The notes under the pieces are model-generated. The model was not told the origin of the DNA. It did no database searches and saw only the letters and a list, made by a program, of their open reading frames with translations. A stretch of 64,000 nt of DNA from Scyliorhinus canicula (Eukaryota): contig NC_052151.1 in the NCBI RefSeq assembly GCF_902713615.1, positions 157,189,050 through 157,253,049 of the forward strand. The letters are read 5' to 3'. Position numbers and translations under genes: made by a program. Below, in pieces: positions 12,058-64,000 of this stretch. Within the stretch, counting starts at the first letter, position 1. Every line of letters begins with the position of its first letter.

Positions 12058-12488
12058 AAAGCAAATTACTGCGGATGCTGAAATCTGAAACAAAAACAGA
12101 AAATGCTGGACAATCTCAGCAGGTCTGACACCATCTGTGGAGAGAGAAGGGAGCTAGTGTTTTGAGTCTGGTTGACTTTTATCTCACAGCGCCAGGGTCC
12201 CAGGTTCGATCTTTGGCTTGAGTCACTGTCTGTGCAGAGCCTGCATGGGTTTCCTCCGGGTGCTCCGGTTTCCTCCCACAAGTCCTGAAAGACGTGCTGT
12301 TAGGTGAATTGGCCATTCTGAATTCTCCCTCTGTGTACCCAAACATGGGCCGGAGTGTGGCGACTGGGGGATTTTCACAGTAACTTCATTGTAAGTGTTA
12401 ATATCAGCCTACTTGTGACGATAATAAAGATTATTATTAGATGCTGTCAGAGTTGCTGAGATTGGCCAGTATTTTCTGGTTTTGTTTG
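12058..12488. mobile_element. Palindromic Penelope-end-derived repeat interrupted by a 5'-truncated V-SINE (about 12181-12439)
   Basis: aaaatgctggacaatctcagcaggtctgacaccatct and its inverted copy agatgctgtcagagttgctgagattggccagtatttt flank the SINE; the same motif ends the Penelope element at 16210-16250. Confidence 0.65.
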
Positions 12489-13888: not shown

Positions 13889-15508
13889 ACCCACCTGTCC
13901 CAGAGCAGAATACCATCCTCCACACTCAGTTCAGACAACTTTGAGGCGAAGGCACGCAACTTGCCTGGCTGCTGTTGAAGCTGACCACCATGTAACACTA
14001 GATCTCATACCTTGGCGAGAACGTGGTCCATCTGAGTCCAGTTGCGGACATGCAATGCAGTGACCAGTAGGCAGTCCATGAAATTCAAGATGGCGGCCAT
14101 TTCTTCACTTGGTGGGGGGGAGAAGGGCGCAGTATTGGCCTGCAAAGGCAAATGGCTCCTTGTGTCGGCATGCACAATGTGGGTACCTGGCCGATGCTCA
14201 AAGAAACATTCAGAAGCAGCCTGCAACAGCTCCCAGTGCCAGATCTGGGCAGGATTGCCCTGTCTTCGCAGAAAAGACCTAGCAAGGGCTTATGGTCTGT
14301 AACGATAAAGAAATGGCAGGCATAGATATATTCCTGAAACCTTTTCACCCTTAAGACCACCGTCAGAACCTCCTTCTCAATCTGCGTGTATTTACATTCA
14401 GCCTCAGCCAGCGGTCGGGAGGCAAAAGAGATCGGCCGCTCCACCATCCAATGGGCCAGGATGGCCCCAATTCCATTGGGTGACGCATCACACTTGATGA
14501 TCAAAGGTTTGGCCAGATCATAGTGAGTCAGTACTCTTGTGAATAACAATCGTCTGTTGGCACGCAGAATAGCAACACTCAACACCCAGGCCTGGTATTT
14601 CTTAAGGAGCAGATGTAAAGGAGCCAGTAAGGCCACGAGATTTGGGACAAACGTTACATAGTAATTAACCAGCCCCACAAACGAGCAAAGTTCTGTGGCA
14701 TCCTTCGGGGCGGGGGCCAACTGGATGGCGCACATTTTCTCAGCAATCCGAGTACAAGCTGTCACGGTCCACCTGATACCCTAAGTAGACCACCTCCTTC
14801 ACATGGAACATACACTTTGCACAGTGCAGATGGACACCATACTCCGAGAAGTGTTGTAACACCGCCTTAAAGTTCTCCATATGCTTCTGCCAGTAGCCCC
14901 TGTGACCAGTATGTTGTCCAAATACACTGCAACGCGCGGCGACCCCCGCAGGAGAGCTGTACTGACCATGAGTTTATAATCCCTGCACAAACAGATTGTT
15001 CTGTCCGGTTTCATGTCAGGGACAACTGGTGCCGCCAAACCCGCGCAGCATACGGGCCAAATAATGCCAAAATAGTGTTGAGTTCAGCTTCCATCTTCTC
15101 TATCAAGACATAGGGCATGCCCAATAATATCACGGTTAAGCTTGCGAGTTAACCTGGATCTTGGCCACAGCCCCTTTTATGGTCCTTAAGCGAGGCTGGA
15201 AGACTTCAGGGTACTTGGCAAGCACCTCACACATGCCACCAGAACCCACTTGGAGAGTGTGCTGCCAGTACAAGAGCAAATGGTGCAACCAATCACGCCC
15301 CAACAGGCTAGGTCGTTCCCTTGAATGATAAGAGGGAGGTGAGCCAGCTCGCAGCCATAAACGACGGGAGTCAACTCCGTCTCTACAATACGCAGCTGCT
15401 CCCCATTATACATGGCCAACTGAAGCACTTTCCGCCAATACCAAAGTCTGCACACCCTTTATGCAGTCAAAGGTGTTCCATGCCACAACACAAACCATCG
15501 CGGCAGTA

Positions 15509-16597
15509 TTTATTTTATTCGTTCATGGAACGTGGGCATCACACGTGGTCTCCTCTATATCGGAGAGATCAAATGTATACTGAGTGATCGCTTTGCTGAG
15601 TACCTTCGGTCTGTGTGCATTCAGGACCCTTCCCGTTGCTTGCTAATTTAACACAAGACCCTACTCCCATGCCCACATGTCTGTCCTTGGCCTGTTCCAG
15701 CGAAGCTCAACGCACACTGGAGGAACAACACCTCATCTTCCGGTTAGGCACGCTACAGCCTTCCGGTCTCAACATCGAATTCAACAACTTCAGATGGTTA
15801 GCTCTACCCCACCTCGCCCCTTTTGTTTTCATTCCATTTTACTTTAACTGTCTTTTAAATTTTATTTCTTTTTTGTCTTTGTTTATATTTCCCTCCCCAT
15901 CTTATCCTCCCTCTCCTTACCTTTTCTCCCCTTTGCATCCCCTTTCCCCCCGACATCTGTCACAGCTTACCCTCTGATTTTAGTTTCTCTGCTGTCGAGC
16001 CTTTCACACCTTTTGTTCTCTCTGGGGACTGCCATTAGCACTCTTTCCCCATGGTTTCTGTGGCTATTAGCACCCGGTTTCCCTTGATTTCTGTGGCTAT
16101 GACTTATCTTTCATTCTCACTCCACAGTATAAATATCTCCCACTTTCTATGCCTTTTAGTTTTGGCAAAGGGTCATCTGGACTCGAAACCTTAATTCTTT
16201 TCTCTCCCTACAGATGCTGCCAGACCTGCTGAGATTTTCCAGCATTTTCTCTCTGTGGGCATCACAGGCTGTGCCAGCATTTATTGCCCATCCCTAATTG
16301 CCCTCGAGGGGGCAGTTAAGAGTCAACCACATTGCTGTGGGTCTGGAGTCACATGTAGGCCAGGCCAGGTAATGACGGCAGATTTCCTTCCCTAAAGGAC
16401 ATTAGTGAACCAGTAGGGTTTTTGAGACAATTGACAGTGGTTCCATGGTCATCATTCGACCTTTTTAATTCCAGATTTTTACTGAATTCAAATTTCACCA
16501 TCTGCAGTGACAGAATTTGAACCAGGGTCACCAGGGTATTACTCTGGGTCTCTAGATTATCAGTCCAGTGACAATACCACTACGTCGCCAACTCCCC
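15509..16597 (-). mobile_element. Deu-type (SacSINE1-like) tRNA SINE split by a Penelope insertion
   Basis: tRNA-like head near 16597, body 16255-16590, tail resumes at 15543-15509; second copy at 34035-34337. Confidence 0.75.
15544..16254 (+). mobile_element. 5'-truncated Penelope-like element (GIY-YIG C-terminus), 12-bp TSD
   Basis: LYIGE...EEQHLIFRLGTLQPSGLNIEFNNFR; GTGGGCATCACA at 15532-15543 and 16255-16266. Confidence 0.85.
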
Positions 16598-26342: not shown

Positions 26343-28600
26343 TGTATTATTATAACTATCAGCATTACAAGGGGTAATGTAGTGTAAAGAGTACCCACTA
26401 GAGGGAGCTACAGATACAACTATATAAAACAGTGATGCTAGATCTTAGGGGAGGAGTGTATGCAGGAGATAGCTAGTGAAGGTAAAAATGCAGTTAGTGT
26501 GAGAAGGTTAGATTGTAGTGAGATTGGCAGTAGATGAGTGTTGTTCGATGTTTTTGATCAATTGTATTCTAAAGGACTAAGTGTCAAAACCCAGTCGAAA
26601 CACCACATGGTACCAGGAGTTTATTCCTTTAAAGAAATAGTAATTAGATTAGGTTAGAATCGCATTAGAAATAGAAGATACTCAGAAAAAATCTACAGTA
26701 AAGACTGATCAGAAGATGGAAGGTCTTCAAGAGACAAGGTAAACTATACCAGAACTGGGCTTTCTTTAAACAATAGTTTGAAGTAGTTGTTTCTGCCTCC
26801 ATGCTTGAAAATGCATCAGACCAAAGTAAAATACCACTCCTACTAAATGTGGCTGGACCGCAAGCATTGGAGCTATTCAATTCATTTCAATTTAGTGCAG
26901 ATGAGGACAAAAATAAATGCAGCATGGTGCTCCAAAAGTTTGACACACACTGTAAGAAACAGGTGAAAAATCTGATGAGCACTACATGTTAAACAAATGG
27001 CTGCAGTTCAGAGGAGAGTCTGTAGATTCAGACATCACAGCTCTTAAGCTGTTGAGCGCAGTCAAGTAATTTTTCCTCAGTCTCAGAGTCTATGCTGCGA
27101 GATAAAGTTGTATTTGGAATAAACGGTGAATGGGTGCACGAGAAAAAATTAAGAAGGCCGGTGTTGTCAATTGAAGAAACTATAAATAAGGCCAGCGAAC
27201 AGGCATCGAACAAATATGCCGAATTCGTGGCTAAGGAAAATCAATAAATGTGGCTGACGCCATTGATGCTGTGTCGCAGCAAAGAAAACTGCGTACAACG
27301 GCTGGCGGCAATTTTGAATGTCACATCACAAGCATGATGATGTGCACATGGACACTCCCCACAGTAAAAAACATTGTCCGGCAAGAGGGAAACATTGTTT
27401 CAATTGTGGCAAACTGAACCACTTTTCAGCACAGTGTTGTTTATCAGCAACTGTTCCAGGAACCAAATTTAAACAGTCTTATAGTGATGGCAGATGGATC
27501 CAAAGTGTGCAAAGTGCTGAGAAAAAAATCCAAAATCGTAGCGGCTAGAGAGGATTGCTCACCACATTCACTTTTGGATATCTTCATCATAGAAGCTACC
27601 ACTCGGATTGATTTACTGGATTGGGAAGAAAGACCAGTAAAAGCACTCTCAAAGATAATAAAGGAGTGGACTGTCTCATTTGAAATAAATGGAGAATTGA
27701 TCCCATTTAAGATTGATACAGGAGCGCACGCAAATATTATCACGTACCGATTGTTAAAGCAAGCAATCAAAAAACCTCTGATAAAGCAGTCCGCCTGTAA
27801 ACTCACAGATTACAATGGCAACACGATAGCCTCAAAAGGGCCATGCTGTCTCGGCGTGAAGAGTGGGAAAATAGAGATACCCATCGACTTTGAGGTGATA
27901 GAGGGTGAGAAATCTTCATTGATTGGTGTTGATGCTGGGGAAACATTGCAGCTAATTGAAAGGATTCACTCAACCAGTACTTCAGATGACACAGTCCTGC
28001 TCAAGCGAGACAGGATAGTGATACCTGCCAGTTTACGTTTAGGGATTCTCCAGCAGATTCACGAGGGTCACCAAGGCATCGAAAAGTGTCATGGGCGAGC
28101 CAGACAATCGGTGTATTGGCCCGGAATAAACCAAGATATCGATCAGTATGTTCAAGATGTCCAATTTGTCAGATGCATCAGCCTGCACAGAGCACAGAAA
28201 CCATCCGTTTTTTTGGTGAAGATTGTGACCGGTCCATGGAAAAAGATGGGCATGGATCTATTTCATTTGCAGGGTCATGATTACTCGATAGTCACAGCCT
28301 ATTACTCCACCTTTCCAGAGGTGATGTTGTTGAAAGATTCAACTGCCAGATCAGTGATAAAGGCAACAAAATCGATTTTTGCATGCCATGGTATACCTCT
28401 TAACGTTGTCTGTGACAATGGTCCATGTTTTTCGAGTTGGGAGTGGACACAGTTTGCAGAGCAAAATAATTTCAACCATCTGACTAATTTCAACTCAGTC
28501 TAACGGGAAAGCCGAGAAACGAGTAGGGACAATTAAGAAGTTATTCTGCAAAGCGAGTGCCGATGGTCAAGGAATGTCATTAGCGTTAGTCTGGCCTTCT
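26343..28600 (+). mobile_element. Gypsy element: 5' LTR, tRNA-Leu-like PBS, gag, PR-IN fusion lacking RT/RNase H
   Basis: LTR ends 26607, PBS TGGTACCAGGAGT; zinc knuckle CFNCGKLNHFSAQC; ORF 27484-28503 joins FKIDTGA directly to HEGHQGIEKC...CDNGPCF. Confidence 0.88.
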
Positions 28601-32247: not shown

Positions 32248-32775
32248 AAGGAAAGCACAGACTTGTAGTTTCGTAACAGGGGGGAAAGTGCTTGTGTTAT
32301 TATCCGTGTCAGATGAACCAGTGATAGCCAGATTTAGTAGGTCTTATCAAATCAAACGAAGGTTGAGCGAGGTACGTTATCTGATATGCATACCAGATAG
32401 ATGTAAATCAGAGTGTGTCGTATCAATCTGTTTAAGAAATATTGGGATAGAGGAGATGAGGACAAGCATGAGGTATTGATAATAATGAAACAAGGAGAAG
32501 GAAAAGGGTTAAATTCTGACAATGACTTCCCTAAAATTCATTTGGATATTGAGGAAGTCCTGAAAAATTTAAACAACTGATTAAGTTATCTTCCGGATAA
32601 GAGCAAGAGCAAATTGAAAGTGTTACTGCAGTCCTATAAATGTATTTGTGAGGATAAATTAGGTAGAAGGGAGGTAGAAATGCATGATGTGGATGTGGGG
32701 GATACAATCCAGTTAAAGTGGCATCCATACATGTTAAATCCAGGAAGATTATCACAAGTACAAAAGGAAATTGAA

Positions 32776-32950
32776 GGATTGGCCATGCTAAATTGCCCGT
32801 AGTGTCCTAAAAAGTAAGGTTAAGGGGGAGTTGTTGGGTTACGGGTATAGGGTAGATACGTGAGTTTGAGTAGGGTGATCATTGCTCGGCACAACATCGA
32901 GGGCTGAAGGGCCTGTTCTGTGCTGTACTGTTCTAAATTCTAAATTCTAA
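32776..32950 (+). mobile_element. 5'-truncated V-SINE
   Basis: Near-identical to 3601-3762; (TTCTAAA)n tail. Confidence 0.85.
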
Positions 32951-41789: not shown

Positions 41790-43713
41790 AGCTTTACAAT
41801 GATCAGTTAAACAATTCTAAAACACAAGGAAAAACTTAAACTTACGATCTATACCTGCTACTAACTCCAATTAAGCAACCCAATACAGTTCAAATGCTAC
41901 TTATAAATAGAGTTAAGAGATCACATGTTTAGTTGTGTAGACCTTTGGAGAGAGTTCCATTCAAGAGCAGATTCGGTATACTTCTGATCAACCCAGCAGA
42001 ATTTGGCAAAACTGTTGTTCAACTTAAAATCCTTCTGTCTGGTCCGACCCAAATCCTATGCCAAACTGTAAAACTACAAATAGACCTGGATCCTTCCATT
42101 AATTACATTATCTGTATCCCACTAAGATGCCACTTAATCTGCTTAGCTAGGACTAAGTATAAGCCCTCACAAGTTATCTACTCTCCAGAGAATCTTCAGC
42201 AATCATAACAATGTCCCATTAGCCCTTTATCTGTAATCAATTAAATGGATAGAATCAATCATGACCTCAACTCTTGCGATTTTACCACTTTAGCAGACAC
42301 AGTCTGGATGCCTTAACCTAGGTTCTTTAATAATATTACTGTGACAAATATATGCTTTGTCCCAGATTTTTAAAAATATTTTCTTACATTTATCACACCT
42401 CCCCCTTAAAAAATGAACCAGCAGTATGGAAAGATGCCTTCATTTTTCAAAGCCACTACTATTACGTTATATGATACAAATCTAATCATATTTATGCATG
42501 CTAATTTAAACATTAATATAGTCCATTTAAATCTTTCATTCCAAACTTTGAACATTCCATTTTCTTTACAACTCAAAGTCATGTTAAAGCATCTGTAATC
42601 ACATTTCTCATTCTGCTACATGTATCATTATCAAGTTAAATGGTTGAAGCAATAAATTCCATCAAAACAGTCTGGCATTTCTATCTTTAAACCTCATTGG
42701 ATTATGGCCTGTATAAGCAATTGTCTCTGAAGAAGTGTCAGGAACATAAATGTCAAAATATTGCAAAGCCAATACCAAACTCAATGTCTCCTTCTCAGTG
42801 GTTGAATATTTATTTTGATGGACATTTTTGTTTTTTTGGAAAAGTGACCAACAGGTCTATTATACTTTTGTTGTCTTCTTGTAACAGTACAGCACCAATG
42901 CCAACATCATTCACATCAATGGCCACCTTAAATTGCTTGTCTTAATTCCAAAACTAGTGTGGCAGTCAATTCAGTTTTCAGACTGTCGAATGCCTCCTGA
43001 CATTCTGACGTCCAATGAAACCTCCAGTTCTTTTTTAAGAATTCAGTCAGTGGGCCAACCACACGGCTGAAATTTGGCATGAATTTTCTGCAGAAATCAC
43101 TCATGCCCAGAAATCTCAGAACATGTCTTCTCATTGATTTTATTGGGAACTCCCCAATAGCTTTAGTTTTCACACCCCGTGGTGCCAACTAATCATGTCT
43201 AACAGTATGGTCTAAGAATGTGACTTGGGCTTTCAGAAGCTCACTTGTAGTCAAATTTATCAAGAAGCCAGCCTCCTGTAGTCGATCAAAAACGTCCTTT
43301 AAATGTTCCAAATGCTCCTTCCGCTTTTGACTGAACACCACCGGATACACAATTCTTTAGTCCAGAAATTACCTTGCTGGTTAGTTTGTCGAATCTTGCT
43401 GGTGTTCATTCCAAACGGAATAACTTTAAACTGATACAGACCATTTGACATTACAAAAGCTGAAACTTCCTTCATCTTCCGTTTAGTAATTCAATTTTGG
43501 TAATGAATTTTGCTTGCCCCACCTTTTCAATACAGCCTTCCAAATGAGGAATAGGATATGAATCTGGCTTCATAACTGCACTGCCATTCATGCAATCCAC
43601 ACACAGTTGTTACGCTCCATCTTGTTTTGGGACCATCACAATAGATAGAGAAATACAGCACAGAACAGGCCCTTCGGCCCACGATGTTGCATCGAACTTT
43701 TGTCCTAAGTTAA

Positions 43714-43922
43714 TCAAAGAATTTTGGACAATTTTTCATGGCCAATCCACCCAACCTGCACATCTTTGGACTGTGGGAGGAAACCGGAGTACCCGGAGGA
43801 AACCCACGAAGTCACGGGGAGGATGTGCAGACTCCACACAGACAGTGACCCAAGTCGAAATCGAACTTGGGACCCTGGAGCTGTGAAGCAATTGTGCTAT
43901 CCACAATGCTACCGTGCTGCCC
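43714..43922 (-). mobile_element. Shortened V-SINE embedded in the CR1 3' UTR
   Basis: Head and V core lie between the ORF2 stop and the CR1 tail; AAGTTAA repeated at 43707-43713 and 43928-43934. Confidence 0.85.
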
Positions 43923-43955
43923 TTAAGAAGTTAACCTACACTCCATTATTCTACC

Positions 43956-45578
43956 CTAATCCATGTACCTATCCAATAGCCGCTTGAAGGTCCCTAACGT
44001 TTCCGACTCAACTACTTCCACAGGCAGTGCATTCCATGCCCCCACTACTCTCTGGGTAAAGAACCTACCTCTGACATCCCCTCTATATCTTCCACCATTT
44101 ATCTTAAATTTATATCCTCTTGTAATGGTGTGTTCCACCCGGGGAAAAAGTCTCTGACTGTCTGTTCTATCTATTCCCCTAATCATCTTATAAACCTCTA
44201 TCAAGTCGCCCCTCACCCTTCTCCGTTCTAATGAGAAAAGGCCTAGCACCCTCAACCTTTCCTCGTATGACCTACTCTCCATTCCAGGCAACATCCTGGT
44301 AAATCTCCTTTGCACCTTTTCCAAAGCTTCCACATCCTTCCTAAAATGAGGCGACCAGAACTGCACACAGTACTCCAAATGTGGCCTGACCAAGGTTTTG
44401 TACAGCTGCATCATCACCTCACGGCTCTTAAATTCAATCCCTCTGCTAATGAACGCTAGCACACCATAGGCCTTCTTCACAGCTCTATCCACTTGAGTGG
44501 CAACTTTCAAAGATTTATGAACATAGACCCCAAGATCTCTTTGCTCCTCCACATTGCCAAGAACCCTACCGTTAACCCTGTATTCCGCATTCATATTTGT
44601 CCTTCCAAAACGGACAACCTCACACTTGTCAGGGTTAAACTCCATCTGCCACTTCTCAGCCCAGCCCTGCATTCTATCTATGTCTCTTTGAAGCCGATAA
44701 CAGCCCTCCTCACTATCCACAACTCCACCAATCTTCGTATCATCTGCAAATTTACTGACCCACCCTTCAACTCCCTCATCCACGTCGTTAATGAAATTCA
44801 CAAACAGCAGAGGACCCAGAACTGATCCCTGCGGTACACCACTGATAACTGGGCTCCAGGTTGAATATTTGCCATCCACCACCACTCTCTGTCTTCTATC
44901 GGTTAGCCAGTTTGTTATCCAACTGGCCAAATTTCCCACTATCCCATGCCTCCTCACTTTCTGCACAAGCCTACAATGGGGAACCTTATCAAATACCTTA
45001 CTAAAATCCATGTACACTACATCCACTGCTTTACCTTCATCCACATGCTTGGTCACCTCCTCAAAGAAGTCAATAAGACTTGTGAGGCAAGACCTACCCC
45101 TCACAAATCCGTGCTGACTATCCCTAATCAAGCAGTTCCTTTCTAGATGCTCAGAAATCCTATCCCTCAGTACCCTTTCCATTACTTTGCCTACCACCGA
45201 AGTAAGACTAACTGGCCTGTAATTCCCAGGGTTATCCCTATTCCCTTTTTTAAACAGGGGCACGACATTCGCCACTCTCCAATCCTCTGATACCACCCCT
45301 GTTGACAGCGAGGACGAAAAGATCATTGCCAACGGCTCTGCAATTTCATTTCTTGCTTCCCATAGAATCCTTGGATATATCCCGTCAGGCCCGGGGGACT
45401 TGTCTATCCTCAAGTTTTTCAAAACGCGCAACACATCTTCCTTCCTGACAAGTATCTCCTCGAGCTTATCAGTCTGTTTCACACTGTCCTCTCCAACAAT
45501 ATGGCCCCTCTCATTTGTAAATACTGAAGAAAAGTACTCGTTCAAGACCTCTCCTATCTCTTCAGACTCAATACACAA
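43956..45578 (-). CDS. CR1 ORF2 reverse transcriptase (5'-truncated, 540 uninterrupted codons)
   Basis: NYRPVSLTS, QHGFVRGRSCLT, YMDFSKVFDKVPH, GVPQGSVLGPLLF, KFADDTK, RPHLEYCVQFWSP. Confidence 0.95.
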   Translation of the reverse strand: MCIESEEIGEVLNEYFSSVFTNERGHIVGEDSVKQTDKLEEILVRKEDVLRVLKNLRIDKSPGPDGIYPRILWEARNEIAEPLAMIFSSSLSTGVVSEDWRVANVVPLFKKGNRDNPGNYRPVSLTSVVGKVMERVLRDRISEHLERNCLIRDSQHGFVRGRSCLTSLIDFFEEVTKHVDEGKAVDVVYMDFSKVFDKVPHCRLVQKVRRHGIVGNLASWITNWLTDRRQRVVVDGKYSTWSPVISGVPQGSVLGPLLFVNFINDVDEGVEGWVSKFADDTKIGGVVDSEEGCYRLQRDIDRMQGWAEKWQMEFNPDKCEVVRFGRTNMNAEYRVNGRVLGNVEEQRDLGVYVHKSLKVATQVDRAVKKAYGVLAFISRGIEFKSREVMMQLYKTLVRPHLEYCVQFWSPHFRKDVEALEKVQRRFTRMLPGMESRSYEERLRVLGLFSLERRRVRGDLIEVYKMIRGIDRTDSQRLFPRVEHTITRGYKFKINGGRYRGDVRGRFFTQRVVGAWNALPVEVVESETLGTFKRLLDRYMD

Positions 45579-45615
45579 TCTCCCGCTACTGTCCTTGATC
45601 GGACCTACCCTCGCT

Positions 45616-47842
45616 CAGGGCCAGCTCAAGGTACCGGCAACTCGGGCAGTCGCCCGGGGCGCCATGTGCTAGGGGGCGCTAGGAACCCTTTACAAATGTT
45701 CAGTCATTGCTGTGAATTGCTGGTACAGTGAGATTTATTTAGTGACTTTTGAACAAGTCCTCAACGGGAAGGGAAGACGCATATTTGCTTTGATGTCTGC
45801 CGAGATAGTGAAGCAAGCCCGGTTCTACATTTGGGTTCACATATGGAGGGGGAGGGGGGGGGATTGGTAAACACAACCATCGGGCCTGCTGCTGGGGCCA
45901 CAGGGCTGACCCGCCGCCTATAAATGTCAATAACGTCTTGTTAGAATCAAATACCTGCAGCACTCCACCACCTCTTAGATCAAAGCAAATCACTGAGGAT
46001 GCCGGAGACGGAGACAATCCACCCTCCCATCCCCCCACCCCACCCAGAACAGACAGAACAATCTCAGCAGGTCTGACAGCCTCTGTGGAGATAGAGATCT
46101 GCAGATGGGATTAGCTTTGTATTTGCAGTTCTGCTTCCCGTTCACTGGACGAAGAATGATCCGGACTCCAAACCTTAGCTCCGAGGTTCTCTCTCCACTT
46201 CGTGTGACCCCCCACCAAAAAAAAAGGTTAAGAGTTCCAGTCGCCTGAATCAACAGCCTTGGCTCTGGGAAATACTAATTCTGTTGTAAGAAATCTGCAA
46301 CAACAACAAACATATTGACCAGACAAGAGAACAAGGTGAAGTGATTCTGTCAGCGGAGATTCCCTCTGTGGACGGGGCAGACAGGCTTGGGGGTGGGGGG
46401 GGGGGGAATGGATAATTCCCTCAATTATACACTGTCTCACCCAATGAGTAGATGAGTAGAGTAAAATAAGAATTAATCACAGGTGCGTTTGCCAGTGTAT
46501 TTGGTGTGTTAACCATTAATAAATCACAGTTTCTTACTGTCGTTAATGATTACAGAGAAATGGACACCAATTTGTAGCAATCTGAGTTTTGGCAGAGAAT
46601 TCCGTTTTGTCATTGGGAGGAGAAGGTAACAATGCTGTCAACTTTCAGCCTCTCTCTCTCTCTCTCTCTCCTCTTTCTCAGTGGCTAGTAGCGACATCAT
46701 CAGGCAGTGTTAATAAGGTGGGGTGTGCGGGCAGAGTCTGTCCTCAGGTACTCCAAACCCTCCACTGGACAACAATGCAGAGATCACCCATTGAAAAAAC
46801 CAATGCGTTCTCCAAACTCTTCTTCAGGTAAGCTCCTTCCGCATTCCGAGCCACCCCTCTCTTCCTCTCTCTCTCTGTCTCACTCCTCTTGTTCTCACCG
46901 CGGGGAGGGGGTGAAATGAATCGTTCCCACACTTTTCCCGGAATCACTGCAGGGTTGGTATTGATTAACCTGCCCCTGGCACCCAGCCTGAAATGCCACG
47001 GCCATGTCCCTTTCACACGAGCGGCGTTGCTGCACTTCGGGCATTTCAAGGTCCAGGGCAACGACTCCCACCAAGTGGCAACTGACCTTACCCCGGTCTT
47101 GCTGTTTGCCAATCAGCTCCCTAACTCGCCGGAGAAACCAGAGCTTCACCGGAGCGCCGGCGACGCTTCAGCTGTCTGTCCTTTGAAGTCTCAAAACTCT
47201 TCCGAAACTTTGCTCCAACTTTTTTTCACCCCCTTGACCACACGCCTGAGACCGCTTGACGGTGCAGAGGCCAACAATCACGAGTTCGCTTCAGACGTCC
47301 TTTTGCAGCCGCGAAAAGGGAAAAGTCTGACATCTGGTTAAAGTTACTGAATGTGCAGCACATGCATCTGAGGGAGAAAGTTTCGCGGATCGTCGCTCGG
47401 GTGATTCAGAAACATTTCATTTGTTATCAATTGGACAGCGTTCGGGTCCTGTCCTGACCATCATGGTATGTTTTGAGAGGCAGACAGTTTTTGTTTTTTA
47501 AATGAGAGACAGGTTAGTTGTGTACACAGTGAATTGAAGATCGGTCCTGGACAGAATATAGAAACGAAAAAATTTCTACCCATTAAAAGTTGTGAGGCTA
47601 AATGAGAACTATTTGCCAAATGGCTCTGGGGTGACTCGTGTGTCCAGCAGTGGGTCCGGGAAGCGGTTCGCGTTACTGTACAGAGTGGCTGAGCTGTGAA
47701 CGCCGCCAAGTTGTATTGTAACTGCTGAATTTTTATTCTACATTTTCAGTTTTTCTCCTTGTGAAAATTTAAAAAAATTATATTTGTAAGGGCGCCGAAG
47801 TTCAGCTTGCCCGGGGTGCCAGCAACCCTAGGGCCGGCGCTG
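45616..47842. mobile_element. Non-autonomous hAT (Tip100/MER45-like ends) carrying a captured CFTR fragment
   Basis: Ends CAGGGCCAGCTCAAGG and (reverse complement) CAGCGCCGGCCCTAGG, 12/16 match; 8-bp TSD CCCTCGCT (45608-45615) / CCCTCACT (47843-47850); GGCGCC-rich subtermini; no transposase. Confidence 0.85.
46775..46827 (+). pseudogene. CFTR: CFTR exon 1 coding segment, intact but apparently a transposon-borne gene fragment
   Basis: MQRSPIEKTNAFSKLFF-R| versus human MQRSPLEKASVVSKLFFS; 53 coding nt and phase-2 donor AG|gtaagc as in vertebrate CFTR exon 1; exon 2 not seen downstream in the window. Confidence 0.9.
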
Positions 47843-48827
47843 CCCTCACTCCTAGATGAGCTCCTGTCGCTGCAACTCACTTCAATGGTATTATTCTTAA
47901 GCATACTTTCAATCTCCTTTTGTGCCTGTGCCAACTTTAGTGGATTTAGTCTATATGAATGTTGTTTAATTGGAATATAATTTCCTACCTCTATATCATG
48001 TATAATCACCTTTGTACTTCCTAGTTTGTTACCACAAGTAGCTCTATGTGACTGCAACAGCTCTTTCAGGCCACTCGGAATTTCCTGTGGAAGGTAACTC
48101 AATAATGCATCCAAATTTCTTCCTGCGTCCTCATTGTCCAATCCAATCCATTGGATTTATCTCTTCTCTCTGAATCATAATGACTAACACATCCTCCTCA
48201 TTTCCTTCCCTATCAAAATACATTTTCAGCATATCAACATGACATACCCGTGAGTTTTCCTTCTATCTGGCATTCTTATCAAATTATTCACCTCACTCAA
48301 TTTCCTTTTGATTTGATAAGGCCCACTAAATCTTGTTTTTAATGGTTCAACTACCACTGGTAACAATACTAATATTTTCTCCCCACTAATAAAACCTCGA
48401 GTTTTTGATGTCTTGTCCGCCTCTTTTTTTCATCATGTGCTGTGACGATTTTAAATGCTGTCTAGTGAAATCACCAGCTCTATTTATTCCCTCCCTAAAG
48501 TTGATACATAGTCCAACAAGGTAGTCTCCGAATGCTGAATCACCAATTTCTCTTTGATCAATTTAAGTGGTCCCCTCACCTCATGACCAAAAATCAATTC
48601 AAACGGACTGAATTTGATTGATTTATTAATTGTATCACTAATTACAAATAAAACAAATGGAATTCCTTTATCCCAATCCTCTGGATACTCCTGACTAGAG
48701 GCCCTCAACATATTCTCCAAAGTTTGATGCCACCTTTCGAACACTCCCTGCAATTCTGGACTATATGCAGTTGGTTTAAATTGCTTAACTCCTAAGCTAT
48801 CCATAATGTTCCTGAATAACTTTGACA

Positions 48828-58220: not shown

Positions 58221-60017
58221 ACTGTGCCATGTCTCTTGGCATCAGGCCGCTCTCTGTGGGCTTGTACCGCTCTCTGTCTCTTGATGTCAGGCCGCTCTCT
58301 GTGGGCCCTGTACCGCTCTCTGACTCTTGGCGACATGCCGCTCTCTGTGGGCTTGTACCGCTCTCTGACTCTTGGCGTCAGGCCGCTCTCTGTGGGCCCT
58401 GTACCGCTCTCTGACTCTTGGCGACATGCCGCTCTCTGTGGGCTTGTACCGCTCTCTGACTCTTGGCGTCAGGCCGCTCTCTGTGGGCCCTGTACAGCTC
58501 TCTGACTCTTGGCGTCAGGCCGCTCTCTGTGGGCCCTGTACCGCTCTCTGACTCTTGGCGTCAAGCCACTCTCTGTGGGCCCTGTACCGCTCTCTATCTC
58601 TTGGGGTCAGGCCGCAGCAGAATCCTGTACTTCTGGGTTAGGATGTCATCTGTGCTGGGCTGAGGATCCTCAAATCCGAAGAACTCATCCATGTCTGTGT
58701 TGGATTCTTAAATGTACAATACATCTCGTTGCGGTTCTGATTTGGTACTGAGGTCGCCACTTCCAATGATGAAATCATCGTCTGAGTCATAATCTTCAAG
58801 GACCATATCATCACTTTTTGTGTCGGAGCTGTAATTGTGCTCGCGATGTCCAAAGAAGTAATCAACGTCTGAGTCGTAGTCTTCAAGGACTAAATCATCT
58901 GTTAGGGTGGTGCTAACTGCTTGTTGCATGGTTCTGCGGAGGTTACGTTCAGCGACTGGTCGAAGTTCAGGCATTGTGCTGTCGTTCCAGGTGAAAGAAT
59001 TGTGTTTTCCGACTTTAATTTTTTTTTACTGTTTTGGGACATTTCACCTTTAAGTGGGCGTAGTCTGGCCCTCTGACATCATGACACTTGTGATGTAGAG
59101 CATAGGAATGGATTGTGCATGCGCAGATCGCTGTTCCTTTACTTTGCACCGTTTTCGCAACTGCGCATGCGTGGCTTCTCACGTATGCGCAAACGGACCT
59201 TCCTTTTCTGTGCGCTCTTGTGTTTTCCTCGCAGTATGTTTGAAACTTTTCCAGGACTGTCTGGAAGTCTCTCTTGTCTTGCCCTTTGGAGTACTTGATG
59301 GTCTTGAAGATTTCTGCTGCTCTTGCACCTGCAATGGTGAGCAGAAGCTTTATTTTCTCTGCATCAGCCACGCCATCTAGGTCGGACGCTACCAGGTAGA
59401 TCTTGAATCTCTGCCTGAACGCACGCCAGTTTGCACTGAGATTGCAGTGGTACCTGAGCTGCTGTGGAACTGGAATCTCAAACATCTTGCCTGGGTGCTG
59501 TTGCTGGAGTCATGGATATGTTGAGTTGAACTATATAGATTTAACAAGCACTAACAGGTACCATGTTGTGTTCTGCTTCTTCATGTAGCATAAGCTGCTT
59601 CTTTGATGTATACTCTGACAAAGGAAGGTTCAGACTTGGTGATAGGTTTAACACATTTATTGAACAGTTAACAATTCTCCTACTTGAGTTCAACTCTCAT
59701 GCTGATATCTTGCTATAGGAACAATCTAACTAACCATTCTGCTCTAATGCATGCGGTGGGTGTGATGCTTTCAATCCGCCCTGTCTCTCTGAGTGTAGCC
59801 TCTGGAAAGAGAAAGAGCATGTGTGCCCTGTCCTTTTATATGTGGTAGTGTCACCTCTGGGTTCGTCTTGACTGCCCATTGGTCGTGTCCTATCTTACTG
59901 ACCTATTGGTTGAATGTCTGTGTGTCATGATGTCTCTGGTGCTCCCTCTAGTGTTTATTTAGTTCTAGTGTATCTACATTAACCACTTGTGTATTCACAG
60001 TGATGCATATCACCACA
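58221..60017 (-). mobile_element. Truncated Gypsy: 5' LTR (59564-60017), PBS, gag N-terminus
   Basis: LTR followed by TGGTACC; ORF 59015-59485 NLSANWRAFRQRFKIYLVAS...KIKLLLTIAG. Confidence 0.8.
58233..58614. repeat. 45/46-bp minisatellite, about 8 copies
   Basis: Unit ctcttggcgtcaggccgctctctgtgggccctgtaccgctctctga alternating with a 45-bp gacatg/ggcttg variant. Confidence 0.95.
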
Positions 60018-63000
60018 CCTGCATTCTCAGCTGGTGTGCCAACAGGCAGCTGGCTTTGTCTCCGTGTTCGTATAGGGTCCCACGTGCCTGGCGCTGTTGG
60101 TGTACTGCTTTCCTGGAGGAGAGCAGATCAAAGTTCCTTTGTAGCTCTTTCCTGCCCGCCAGGGGCTCTATGGTTGGGGCCTCGGAGTATTTACGGTCTA
60201 CCTCCAGTATGGAGTCGATCAGCTGCTGCCCTTTCTTCCATATCTCTTTGCACTTTGAAAGTGATGATTTTCCCTCTTAGTACAGCCTTTACCGTTTCCC
60301 AGAACGTGGAGGGTGAGACCTCCCCGTCTGGTTGTTCTCCGTGTACTCTGCTATGGCCTGCGATATCTTTTCGTTGAAGACCTTGTCAGCTAGTGTGGCA
60401 ATGTCTAACCTCCATGTGGGGCATTGGGCCCTGCCCGTCTCCAGCCTCACGTCCATGTAGTGTGGAGCGTGGTCTGATATCACAATTGCGGAGTATTCCA
60501 CTTTGTCTATCCCTGGAAGCACCGTTTTCCCCACCACAAAGAAGTCAATTCTGGTGTATACGTTGTGCACTGGGGAGAAGAAGGAGAATTCCTTCTCCCC
60601 TGGGTCTGCGAACCTCCAGGGGTCCACCGCTCCCATCTGTTCCATTAGGTGACCAAGTTCCCTTGCCATGCTTGAGGTTTTCCCCGTTTTGGGGTTTGAT
60701 CTGTTAGTCGTTGGATCCTGTACACAGTTGAAGTCCCCCCATGGTTAGCCGGTGAGTCGCTATGTCGGGGATTTCTGCCATGGTCTTCTTGATGAAGCTT
60801 GTGTTGTCCCAGTTGGGTGAGTACACGTTAACTAGTACTGGGTGGCACAGTAGAACAGCGGTTAGCACTGTTGCTTCACAGCTCCAGGGTCCCGGGTTCA
60901 ATTCCTGGCTAGGTCACTGTCTGTGCGGAGTCTGCACGTTCTCCCTGTGTCTGCGTGGGTTTCTTCCGGGTGCTCCTGTTTCCTCCCACAAGTGCCGTAA
61001 GATATGCTTGTTAGGTAATTTGGACATTCTGAATTCTCTCTCTGTGTACCCGAACAGGCGCCGGATGTGGCAACTTGCGGCTTTTCACAGTAACTTCATT
61101 GCAGTGTACTTACAAGTAGTGTAAGCCTACTTGTGACAATAATAAAGAATATTATTATTACTACCGGTGCCCCATCCAGGGCCCCACTGACCATGACCCT
61201 GGGTCCGTAACCGTCTTTGTCGCCCTAAACATCGTCCTCTTGCTGATCAGTAATGCCACCCCCCCCCCCTGGCCCTCGTCCCATAGCTGGAACAGTAGGT
61301 TTGTCCCACCCAGCCCTTTCTTACCCGCAGTCGGTCATGCTCTCTCAGGTGTGTCTCTTGGAGGAAGGAAGACTATGTCGGCCCTCATATTTCTTAGCTG
61401 GGTGAGGACTCTGGATCTTTTCTCTGGGCCGTTGAGTCCCCTTATGGTCCAGGTGACTATCCTGGTGGGGGGCTTCAGTTCCCTCGCTCCTGTGGGATTA
61501 ACCATACTTACCTGGTGGACGGGCCCCTGCCCTCTGGGGTTTCCTTTGTTAGGGGGCCGTCCAGGATGGCCGCTGTCACTGCTCTCTCCATGCGGTCGGA
61601 CCCCTGCGCTCCAGGGTTTCCCTTTGTCCAGGGGTCACCCGACATGGCCGTCCACTGTGCGTCCACCAAGCGGGTAGTCCTCTGCACTCTGGGGTCTCCG
61701 TTAGCCCAGAGACCATACTGGGTGGATGCTTGCAGCAATTCCTTGTTTCGAGCCCTTGGTTGTGGTACTTTGTAGCCCTATTGCTATTCCTTTTCTAGCC
61801 TTGTTTGTCCCTCCTTCCCTGTGTCCCCCCCAGGTCTCTCTCTCCCTCCCTTTGTCCCCCCACCCCGGTCTCTCCCCTGCTCCCCCCTTTTCGCCCCCTC
61901 TCCCGTATACCACGCCTTTGTCCCTCTTTCCCCTGTTCCTATCCCCGTTTCTTCTCCCGCCTCTGTTGAGTGGTTCTCCCCCACCCCCCCCCCCAACCCC
62001 CCGGCCTGGCACCTTCTCCCCTTTGGGGCCGCACTGCGGCCCTGCTTTGGTGCATGCCCCAATGCTAGCTTTCCTGCTAGTACGGTGGCCCCCCTCTCGG
62101 GAGTTACTGTCTCGCTTCTCCCTTGCCCGGCCTCTGCGGTTTTCTGCCCGCTCTTCCTCCATCCTACCCTGCACTCCTCTCGCTTGCTCTCCCTTCTCCG
62201 CTACTCTCGTTCCCTCGTGCTGGGGCCTGGTCTCCCACCTGAAGCGGTCCCTCAGTTAGTGGTTTGCTTTTTGTTCAGGGTGGGCTCGCCGTGGCCGGGG
62301 TGGAGGCGGGGTGGCCTGGCGTTGCCTCACCCCTCCCCTCCCCCCTCCGCCGGCGTGTTGTTGCCCCTTGCCAGGGGCCCCTTATTTCTACCCTAGCTCT
62401 TGGTTTTCCAGCCCGTGTTCCTCAACAAACTCGTTTGCTTCGGCGGGTGCTGTGAAGAAGTATTCTCTTTCTTGGTATGTGACCCAGAGTTTCGCTGGGT
62501 ACAGCATACCAAAACACACTTTGTTTTTGTGAAGAGCTGCTTTCACTCTATTGAATTTGGCCCGTCTCCGAGCTAGGTTTGCCCCAATGTCCTCGTAAAC
62601 TCTAATGGACTGTCCTTCCCATTTGCAGGTTCTGTTTTGCCTGGCCCCACACAGGATTGTTTCCCTGTCTTGGTACCAGTGCAGGTTAACTATAACTGCC
62701 CTCGGGTGGTCCCCTGCCTTGGGCTTCGGGCGCAGCGACCATTTCTGATGTGTTGGGGAAATGTTTCTTCCCACTAAGATGCCCAGCATCTCGGCCACGT
62801 ATGCCGTGGGATTTCTACCCTCTATCCCCTCTGGTAGGCCCACTATCCTGACATTTTACCTTCTCAAGCGGTTTTCCTGATCATCCACTCTGCCCTTCAG
62901 GCTCCCCTGTGTTCTGCCCAGTCTCGCCACCTCCTTTTCCAGGGCCGTGATCCGGTCGCTCATGTCAGTCGCGGCTTTTTCCAGCTCCTTAATGGTCGCC

Positions 63001-63950
63001 TCTTGGGCTTCCAGCTTCTCCTCTTGGGCTTCCAGTTTCTCCTCTGCTCTGCCCAGGGCATGCTGGACCTCCGCCAGGGCCTTGGCCATTGCTGCCTGCA
63101 CTGCGGCCTCTATGTCCGCTCTGGCCTCTGCCTTGTTTTCCTGCTGATGTTCCCTCAGCGCCTTGGCAAAGGCTGCCTTCCAGTTCCAGATCCCTCCTGG
63201 CCCAGGGGGGAAATGCTCCTGTCTGCCCAGCTCTTTTTGTTGCGGCGAACCTTCCGTTCCGCCGCTTCATGCGCTGATTAGCTCATCTGAACGAGCTCAC
63301 ACATTGCCCCGTCTGCTTGTGGTGCCCTTTCTCCCTCAGCTTTGGCTCCCTTCTGGCATTTTTTTCCCCTCCCCATTTTATTTTTTCTTTTCTTTCCCCC
63401 TATTTTCCCCCCTTTTTCTTTTCCCCTCCCTTCTCTCCTTTACCACTTTTGTTTATAAAATTCTTTTCAAGAAAATTAGTTTTTTTTTAAAAAGTGAAAA
63501 CATTTCTTTTTCTTTAAAAGTTTTCTTTTCAAAGTTTTTTTTTGAAAAAGGGGAAGTTTTTTTTTCTTTTCCCTCACTCACCCAGGGTCGAGAGAGAGGC
63601 TTCTGGTTGGGCCGGGAGTCCCTCTTTGTTCCACCGTCTGCATTGCGGTGGTCGCTGCCGGGGGGCGGGGGAGGGGGGTCGGTCCTTGCTGCTGGCTCGG
63701 TCCCTGCTGCTGGCTGGGTCCCCGCTTTGGTCTGGGCCGCCGCTCATCTTACACCGCGCTCTCCTGCCGGGGTGGGGGGGGGGAGGGGGTCGTCGGTCAT
63801 TCCTGCTGGCTCAGTCCCCACTTTGGTCTGGGTCGGCGCTCGTCCTGCCCTGCGCTCTGCTGCCGTGCGTAGGGGGAGCGCGGGGGGGGGGGGGGGAGGG
63901 GGCGCTGGATCGCTCCGTTCCCCTGAGTGCCCAGGTCACCCGCTTTAATG
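60018..63950 (-). mobile_element. L1-clade LINE 5' half (GC-rich 5' UTR, ORF1, ORF2 endonuclease)
   Basis: ORF1 coiled coil and GLPEGIEG...LYPAKLWVTY; endonuclease IVFLQETHL, YTRIDFF, ISDHAP; disrupted frames. Confidence 0.9.
60840..61158 (+). mobile_element. V-SINE ((ATT)n tail) inserted in the L1 endonuclease
   Basis: Head, core and tail; splits the L1 motif APVVLVNVY. Confidence 0.9.
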
Positions 63951-64000
63951 AGCTTTGGAGTCCGGGTTTTTCTTTGTCCCCACTCTCTTGTTGTGGGGGG

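Follow-up and report, generated by a model that had tools for sequence, protein, structure and literature searches.

A probable Pack-hAT transposon carrying the 5' end of CFTR, inserted in a LINE of Scyliorhinus canicula

Capture of gene fragments by cut-and-paste transposons is common in plants, while most animal cases are tiny and single-copy. Pack-TIRs, including Pack-hAT and multicopy elements, were already described in animals in 2021, with 4 of 370 multicopy across 100 genomes and a median capture of 224 bp; their definition requires a parental copy and distinct target-site duplications (TSDs) in addition to TIR-transposon sequence around non-transposon DNA, and sharks are unmentioned in the main text of that study (Tan et al. 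2021, PMC8277862). The closest described systems include Pack-hAT-N8_XT of Xenopus tropicalis, a three-copy element with 291 bp of the CAPSL 5' UTR (PMC8277862), HelibatN3, for which chimeric transcripts are documented, the Pack-MULEs of rice, and a hAT of Dothideomycetes that carries histone H3 (PMC6710886).

The DNA analysed here, referred to as the window, is a stretch of 64,000 nucleotides from Scyliorhinus canicula. A first-pass annotation of its letters had drawn attention to a segment with CFTR exon 1 between transposon-like ends. We find that this segment, 45616-47842, is most probably one copy of a non-autonomous hAT-type TIR transposon, a "Pack-hAT", with the 5' end of the chloride-channel gene CFTR as its interior. 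A capture of about 2 kb that includes a first exon, a start codon and a strong donor, in about 10-20 copies and shared between shark species, would rank among the larger multicopy cases in vertebrates. Such a case would be a natural experiment on whether the 5' ends of genes, once captured, give rise to new promoters or chimeric transcripts, and it carries two practical risks: copies of the element could pass for the first exon of CFTR in annotation, and reads from the CFTR 5' end could be misassigned to element copies in mapping.

Insertion site and ends of the element

The segment lies within two nested retroelements, and the flanks and ends are arranged as follows.

43046-43642, minus strand: downstream half of a Gypsy RT, starting IVMVPKQDG and in frame with the upstream half; a weak RT_RNaseH_2 match lies at 42931-43188
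43643-45615, minus strand: 5'-truncated LINE (CR1-like), with a 540-aa RT ORF at 43956-45578 (RVT_1, E 1.5e-33) and a 3' tail ending ...TCTATCT
45608-45615, no strand assigned: left TSD copy CCCTCGCT, consisting of LINE ORF2 sequence; other CR1 copies continue CCCTCGCT-CTAGTCATT
45616-45697, plus strand: left transposon backbone, with TIR CAGGGCCAGCTCAAGG, very high-copy to about 45679, and subterminal block CCCTTTACAAAT at 45686-45697
47732-47842, plus strand: right transposon backbone, with TIR end ...CCTAGGGCCGGCGCTG and a mean bin depth of about 14,000
47843-47850, no strand assigned: right TSD copy CCCTCACT, from comparison of the flanking 8-mers
47854-48141, minus strand: upstream half of the Gypsy/Ty3-type RT, ending ...IEVSCSDRSSS

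The final 3-5 bases of the LINE are found beyond the insertion, at 47851-47853. When 43643-47853 is removed, the two halves of the Gypsy RT join in frame (...SCSDRSSS/IVMVPKQDG). Since the LINE that holds the element splits a Gypsy RT whose halves abut in this way, the site is not the ancestral position of the promoter, and the in-frame restoration confirms the earlier reading of a CR1 ORF2 target within a Gypsy RT. CR1 copies elsewhere read CCCTCGCT-CTAGTCATT uninterrupted at the insertion point, with the TSD sequence present once, and these paralogous empty sites are represented by 11 contigs in X1 and 26 in X2; the window itself contains no other CR1 of the same family for an in-window comparison. 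That just 3-5 bp separate the insertion from the LINE's 5' end is taken as coincidence.

The first bases of the element are CAGGG and the last are CGCTG. The left TIR, CAGGGCCAGCTCAAGG, extends from 45616 and the right TIR, CAGCGCCGGCCCTAGG on the reverse strand, finishes at 47842; they are imperfect, agreeing at 12 of their first 16 bases and at about 26 of 35 columns when aligned with a gap, and further inward lies another inverted block, CCCTTTACAAAT/ATTTGTAAGGG. A scan of the whole window for the TIR end pattern matched only twice, at the two ends of the element. The flanking 8-mers CCCTCGCT and CCCTCACT are identical at 7 of 8 positions, giving an 8-bp TSD whose single mismatch is a CpG-type G/A change, the G being carried by the majority CR1 sequence. 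The TIR-bounded segment, its 8-bp TSD and the one CpG difference proposed in the first-pass annotation were all found in place. The right flank reads CCCTCACT-C-CTAG, as against CCCTCGCT-CTAG in other CR1 copies, and this one extra C makes the element boundary uncertain by 1 nt. The TIR alignment by itself is weak and not significant: of 3000 end pairs drawn at random from the window, 105 scored no lower. Of 200000 random positions, 8 combined a TIR match of 12/16 or better with a TSD match of 7/8 or better. What makes the element structure convincing is the read evidence presented below, not the TIR alignment score. DNA folding of the element ends revealed nothing remarkable.

The captured interior and CFTR exon 1

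Between the two backbones the following features are observed.

45698-47731, plus strand: low-copy captured DNA of about 2.0 kb forming the interior, whose uniform word depth points to amplification as one block
46058-46095, no strand assigned: core of a highly abundant repeat (SINE-like or LINE-tail-like), recognised by self-matches and a depth in the thousands
46641-46681, plus strand: CT microsatellite upstream of the exon, skipped as a repeat in the read-depth analysis
46684-46774, plus strand: putative 5' UTR of the copied exon 1, with words of the region present in RNA-labelled runs
46775-46827, plus strand: coding part of CFTR exon 1 (53 nt), MQRSPIEKTNAFSKLFF plus the two leading bases of codon 18
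46828-46833, plus strand: splice donor GTAAGC; unspliced read-through meets a stop directly (AGG TAA)
47000-47400, no strand assigned: region downstream of the exon with raised CpG content, obs/exp 0.8-1.08 compared with a window mean of 0.49

The exon reads ATG(46775)-MQRSPIEKTNAFSKLFFR-AG followed by GTAAGC, with the exon/donor border at 46827/46828. A PDB search with the end of the ORF returned a single match, to residues 1-18 of CFTR (6d3r), with 15 of 18 residues identical and an E value of only 0.22 because the match is short. ATG, frame and donor are all intact, in agreement with the earlier description of an intact CFTR exon 1. The donor of human CFTR exon 1 likewise follows 53 coding bases (c.53+1). 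The interior of about 2 kb is assigned a probable CFTR origin, an identification that rests on about 60 recognisable bases. In a six-frame motif search of the window, including the 17 kb downstream, exon 1 alone was matched and no motif of CFTR exon 2 or later exons was found. Across 46684-46827, 55-91% of 11 sampled words were present in RNA-labelled runs, and contigs across the donor (46827/46828) were unspliced in the one RNA-labelled run examined.

The element spans about 1.1 kb upstream of the exon and about 0.9 kb of intron after the donor. The upstream 1.1 kb is CpG-poor and includes the SINE-like piece, whose core matches the window at 12097-12147, 12439-12479 and 16201-16236 and has 63-90 contigs diverging on each side. 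The upstream region also contains CGACATCA and ATTGG, which may represent CRE-like and Y-box-like motifs, respectively, and which are not counted as evidence. When the element was compared by BLAST with the rest of the window, no second copy of the ends or interior turned up, only the SINE-like core over 38-50 bp, and an Rfam search over 43-49 kb found nothing. No internal ORF exceeds 150 aa; the 150-aa ORF had zero matches in a large protein collection, and a Pfam search with nine internal ORFs gave nothing significant and two sub-threshold chance matches. No hAT transposase is encoded in the element or by any ORF elsewhere within the window, and the proposal of an element without transposase is borne out by the lack of a transposase or other domain inside it.

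Copy number and alternative origins

Copy number was estimated from assembler word depth in public reads with one locus-specific contig as the yardstick, so that the values are rough. This error-free 151-nt X1 contig, specific to the right flank of the element, runs from 47824 within the TIR (19 nt) into the Gypsy flank with zero mismatches and has a depth of 2.7. Outside the SINE-like core, the word depth of the interior is uniform, at 24-66 in X1 and 36-138 in X2, which suggests about 10-20 copies of the composite element in the genome. Both termini are very high-copy, with mean bin depth in the 10^4 range, and TIR-transposon sequence at this depth thus flanks non-transposon DNA at a depth of 24-66 on both sides. 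The interior is represented by contigs of 407-1080 nt in runs where the mean contig is 59-98 nt. The majority interior contigs extend from the left backbone (starts at 45650-45686) to the right backbone or close to it (ends at 47709-47761); because they join the interior to the transposon ends, the amplified unit is the interior plus these ends, without the flanks of the window copy. Among the rows listed, no contig departs from the element at a capture boundary. Sequences of other family members part from the window copy after 45679 (left) and before 47732 (right), and one X2 contig links 45679 to 47789, corresponding to a short MITE form.

Two DNA samples, one RNA-labelled run and a further species all yielded backbone-joined interior contigs, and the composite element is therefore also present in a second species. 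All four runs differ from the window letter at 45737, 45909, 46266, 46807, 47010 and 47478 and contain 14 nt extra at 46979-46981, from which it follows that the window copy is a minority variant of the family; a low-depth X13 contig has the letters of the window copy at 46800 and 46807. The recent mobility claimed in the first-pass annotation fits a multicopy family of low divergence.

It is very unlikely that the segment is the native first exon and promoter of CFTR and that its resemblance to a TIR element with a TSD is coincidental. The intact ATG, frame and strong donor, the occurrence of exon-1 words in many RNA-labelled runs and the X13 contig with window letters would be in keeping with a native exon; the segment, however, splits a LINE ORF2 within a Gypsy RT that is restored exactly and in frame, the window letters are in the minority at no fewer than six sites in all runs, and the 17 kb downstream are without an exon-2 motif. 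The interior depth, about 10-20 times that of the locus-specific contig, likewise argues against a native exon and contradicts the idea that this is the sole CFTR exon 1 in the genome. An assembly artefact, in which repeats misled the assembler into a chimeric join of a CFTR-bearing element with unrelated CR1 and Gypsy sequences on its two sides, is comparably improbable. A misjoin would yield no matching 8-bp duplication of CR1 sequence, the 3-5 further CR1 bases after the duplication and the in-frame Gypsy sequence beyond them are not expected from one, and the 151-nt X1 contig leads from the TIR into the Gypsy flank free of mismatches, even though flanks and termini are high-copy repeats and no contig among those listed spans an outer junction with 31 nt or more on either side of it. 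A further idea, that the 2.2 kb became part of the LINE while the LINE was being retrotransposed (5' template switch or transduction) and did not insert later, is the least probable of these origins and was rejected on the basis of orientation, TIRs and TSD. The element is only 3-5 bp off the LINE 5' junction, as this origin would have it, but it is antisense to the LINE, its upstream DNA looks non-transcribed and its intron is unspliced, its TIRs are its own and belong to a family of about 10^4 copies, and LINE sequence is duplicated on both sides.

A minor possibility is that the segment is a TIR element with CFTR exon 1 of a class other than hAT (Mutator-like, P or Zisupton), or a composite "macrotransposon" of two MITEs flanking a native exon. 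No autonomous partner is found within the window, the 1-nt boundary ambiguity makes a 9-bp duplication (CCCTCRCTC) formally possible, and the divergence points of the family vary (45679 on the left, 47732 or 47789 on the right). The TSD CCCTCGCT, with C at positions 2 and 7, also fails the hAT target preference nTnnnnAn, which is weak and not strictly defining. On the other side, a symmetrical TIR alignment is obtained only if the termini are CAG and the TSD is 8 bp long, and the end motifs CAGGG and CAGCG agree with 5'-YARNG, the motif with which hAT TIRs begin by definition. A composite of two elements would show a complete MITE with both TIRs, and neither end has one.

Proposed origin and comparison with known systems

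For a Pack-hAT, the ends (about 64-82 bp on the left and 54-111 bp on the right) would derive from a very abundant MITE-like family, and the interior would be host DNA, a DNA-level copy of the CFTR 5' end comprising upstream sequence, 5' UTR, exon 1, donor and about 0.9 kb of intron. Capture may have occurred by template switching or gap repair inside a MITE copy (FoSTeST / gap-filling model, Tan et al. 2021), with amplification afterwards in trans by a transposase. The window copy inserted into ORF2 of the CR1-like LINE, itself earlier inserted in the Gypsy RT, with duplication of 8 bp; later changes in this copy are a few private substitutions, a deletion of 14 bp and, in the TSD, one CpG transition. 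The copies are probably for the most part passive passengers, in which the exon would be without coding constraint. We consider it unlikely that some of the approximately 10-20 copies each work as a portable promoter of CFTR type with a first exon that splices into neighbouring genes, or that the family persists across species by titrating regulators of CFTR. If portable promoters were present, transcripts would be predicted from CFTR-expressing, salt-secreting tissues, and new genes would be wired into the elasmobranch CFTR expression programme.

The CFTR element would share with Pack-hAT-N8_XT the non-autonomous hAT ends around DNA from the 5' end of a gene at several loci (PMC8277862), and their origin is presumed alike, by template switching followed by transposition. 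They differ in that the CFTR element carries about 2 kb with a coding first exon and donor, in about 10-20 copies, in a cartilaginous fish. HelibatN3 carries the same kind of module, promoter-proximal DNA with a first exon and part of intron 1, is likewise dispersed as a DNA transposon and can give host transcripts start codons and splice sites. Unlike the CFTR element, it is a rolling-circle Helitron without TIRs or TSD and is present in about 1000 copies, and its chimeric transcripts are documented. The rice Pack-MULEs and the Dothideomycete hAT share with the CFTR element the transduplication of host-gene DNA between TIRs and its subsequent amplification, and the carrier of histone H3 is also a hAT (PMC6710886). 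The fungal hAT, however, is a complete element whose hundreds of RIP-mutated copies carry a whole coding sequence (PMC6710886), and Pack-MULEs are plant elements with long MULE TIRs and 9-11-bp TSDs. The CFTR element is thus of a rare but already described kind of animal gene-fragment capture, with an unusual capture size and copy number.

The element: termini and captured CFTR exon

The element (45616-47842, 2227 bp) is best read as a non-autonomous TIR transposon whose ends derive from a MITE-like family on the order of 10^4 copies, and whose interior duplicates the 5' end of CFTR at the level of DNA. Its 5' start is CAGGGCCAGCTCAAGG at 45616 and its opposite-strand end is CAGCGCCGGCCCTAGG, terminating at 47842; a degenerate end pattern matches only twice in the 64-kb window, at these two ends. 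Gapped alignment of the ends gives ~26 identities in 35 columns, a similarity that is non-significant by itself (105 of 3000 random end pairs equal its score), and a second, more internal inverted block pairs CCCTTTACAAAT (45686-45697) with ATTTGTAAGGG (47783-47793). The 8-mers outside the ends are CCCTCGCT and CCCTCACT. On the right, CCCTCACT-C-CTAG is followed by Gypsy sequence, and the extra C leaves the element boundary uncertain by 1 nt, with TIR symmetry kept only under the 8-bp target site duplication (TSD) reading. With its 8-bp TSD, its YARNG-type termini and TIRs that are short and imperfect, the element is predicted to be a hAT; its TSD does not fit the weak target preference of that superfamily.

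The ATG at 46775 opens MQRSPIEKTNAFSKLFFR, and its frame meets AG/GTAAGC at 46827/46828 after 53 coding bases, while unspliced read-through past the donor encounters an immediate stop. When an 80-aa ORF ending in the exon-1 peptide was compared with all solved-structure sequences, the sole match was CFTR (6d3r), residues 1-18 of which align over their full length with 15 identities; the E-value of 0.22 reflects the very short match. The first-pass annotation had proposed an exon-1 copy with ATG, frame and donor in an element devoid of transposase, and both proposals are borne out, the second by internal ORFs that do not exceed 150 aa and have no significant Pfam match. A CFTR exon-2-like motif is absent from all frames of the window. 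Retrocopy origin of the interior is ruled out by the included intron. Only ~60 bases of the 2-kb interior are recognizable as CFTR, and the upstream 1.1 kb is a putative CFTR promoter and the whole 2 kb putative CFTR-locus DNA. The part upstream of the exon is CpG-poor (observed/expected 0.26-0.44) and includes a SINE-like piece; a CpG-richer stretch at 47000-47400 (0.8-1.08) lies downstream of the exon.

Insertion into a LINE nested within a Gypsy element

Features of the insertion site and repeat core copies in the window
43956-45578, minus strand: LINE ORF2, a 540-aa ORF (RVT_1, E 1.5e-33)
From 47854 upward, minus-strand translation: Gypsy-type RT start, ...PIKQHSYRLNPLKLAQAQKEIESMLKNNTIEVSCSDRSSS
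From 43642, minus-strand translation: Gypsy-type RT continuation, IVMVPKQDG.QLCVDC...YPIP
46058-46095; 12097-12147, 12439-12479, 16201-16236: ~40-50-bp repeat core, ...CAGCAGGTCTGACAGCCTCTGTGGAGA...

The left flank of the element is the 5' part of the minus-strand LINE ORF2, whose frame extends upstream as ARVGPIKDSSGRLCIESEE... to 45615, and the 3' tail of the LINE finishes ...TCTATCT at 43643. The two Gypsy RT halves meet on a codon boundary and restore S.S.W.SP-IVMVPKxDG, the usual stretch of Ty3/Gypsy RTs, which indicates that 43643-47853 is an insertion into Gypsy, consisting of a 5'-truncated LINE carrying the 2227-bp element and one duplicated 8-mer. An ancestral promoter location is ruled out, since the LINE with the element interrupts the Gypsy RT; the earlier view that this is very unlikely to be the ancestral position of a CFTR promoter is thus upheld by the rejoining of the RT halves once 43643-47853 is removed. 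Other LINE copies match the left flank to 45616 and then read TAGTCATTCTCATATT... (11 contigs in X1 and 26 in X2, same-species DNA runs), the uninterrupted LINE sequence being ...CCCTCGCT-CTAGTCATT. These contigs are paralogous empty sites, so the 8-mer is LINE sequence that was single before insertion, and the LINE reaches 3-5 bases past it. They carry the G of the left TSD copy, which is therefore ancestral, and the TSD mismatch is a later CpG-type transition, as had been suggested at first reading. The element sits merely 3-5 bp from the LINE 5' junction, a nearness we treat as coincidence.

The window is a retroelement nest in which a host gene is not evident. A second, diverged Gypsy RT start at 32542-32781 (plus strand) has 50% protein identity to 47854-48141 and likewise breaks off soon after ...KEIEGL; LINE-3'-tail-like sequence follows at ~32800-32900 (translated ...GRRACSVLY...), and could represent a separate LINE insertion, placed a few codons upstream of where the 47.8-kb copy breaks off. 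LTR-retrotransposon pol fragments lie at 27484-28503 (plus) and 14085-14765 (minus), one with aspartyl protease, integrase zinc-binding and rve core domains and the other with RT-RNase H. The repeat core reaches depths in the thousands, with dozens of contigs parting on both sides, and is probably a common module of this genome, of SINE or LINE-tail type. A GC-rich tandem array at 58233-58615 (46-bp unit, 8.4 copies, 90% matches) can also be read with 91-bp and 137-bp periods, and strand asymmetry is strong and increases across 60000-64000 (AT skew -0.30 to -0.51, GC 53-58%), with a short 21-bp repeat at 62999-63045.

Copy number, variation and transcription

Logan contigs of four public runs were placed on 45116-48342: X1 and X2, X13 (RNA-labelled) and X16 (another species' DNA). 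The termini are of very high copy, with mean bin depths in X1 of ~24,000 (left) and ~14,000 (right) that true depth exceeds because the high-copy part fills the bins only partly. Other members of the end family part from the element after 45679 and before 47732; a single X2 contig, with 25 nt on one side, runs from 45679 straight into 47789 and weakly suggests a short MITE form. Interior depth is even across 45764-47707 (24-66 in X1, 36-138 in X2, excluding the 38-bp SINE-like core at 46058-46095), which indicates that the 2-kb interior moves as a single unit. Interior contigs reach 400-1080 nt in these shallow runs, where the mean contig is 59 nt (X1) or 98 nt (X2). Set against the depth of 2.7 for the sole error-free locus-specific contig (47824-47974, into the Gypsy flank), the interior has roughly 10-20 copies, a rough figure as word depth is not copy count.

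Majority interior contigs begin at 45650-45686 (X1, X2, X13, X16), inside the transposon backbone, and finish at 47709-47761 (X1, X2, X13). Amplification thus involved the ends and the interior but not the flanks of this locus, which argues for transposition and against segmental duplication. The composite is also present in the second species (X16). Neither outer junction is bridged by a listed contig of the four runs that extends 31 nt to each side. Near-identical element 31-mers occur in X14 (organism B) and in X16 (organism C), at 43-49% of sampled words; either the family predates the split of the species or the species are very close.

The window copy is a minority variant, ~0.3-0.5% different from the family majority: all four runs disagree with its letter at 45737, 45909, 46266, 46807, 47010 and 47478 and have 14 additional bases at 46979-46981. 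Exon codon 9 is AAC (Asn) in the X1 majority and ACC (Thr) in the window, and an X16 contig has an additional A in the A-run at 46793, a frameshift, so that coding constraint on the copies is not apparent. Poly-G-rich direct repeats (45844-45867 and 46388-46411) show contig back-joints (46406 to 45844) and differ in length between runs; they probably give rise to variation in assembly and in length among the copies.

X13 contigs cover the whole element, and one (46376-47123) crosses the donor unspliced with family-majority letters. Either read-through transcripts of copies or carried-over DNA would account for this, and it gives no evidence that the captured promoter or donor is used. In run searches, 24-50% of the words sampled from the element were present in X13-X20. 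For 46684-46827, 55-91% of the 11 words were present in X25-X31, runs not listed as containing the whole element, which suggests that a mature mRNA with a near-identical exon 1 exists, most simply native CFTR mRNA; if so, this would imply recent capture.

Comparison with known captures

Our literature search turned up no publication describing a transposon that carries CFTR, or Pack-TIRs in sharks. In a survey of 100 animal genomes, Tan et al. 2021 listed 370 Pack-TIRs with a median capture of 224 bp; only four of these were multicopy, of which three came from Xenopus tropicalis and the fourth from alligator (PMC8277862). Among the four, Pack-hAT-N8_XT carries 291 bp of CAPSL 5' UTR on three chromosomes (PMC8277862). 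In fungi, histone H3 has been captured by a hAT (PMC6710886). The Helitron-borne HelibatN3/NUBPL of bats, at ~1000 copies (PMC4224331), resembles the element in that its module also comprises upstream DNA, first exon and part of intron 1. The type of capture is thus already known, and the element stands out by its capture size, copy number and host lineage.
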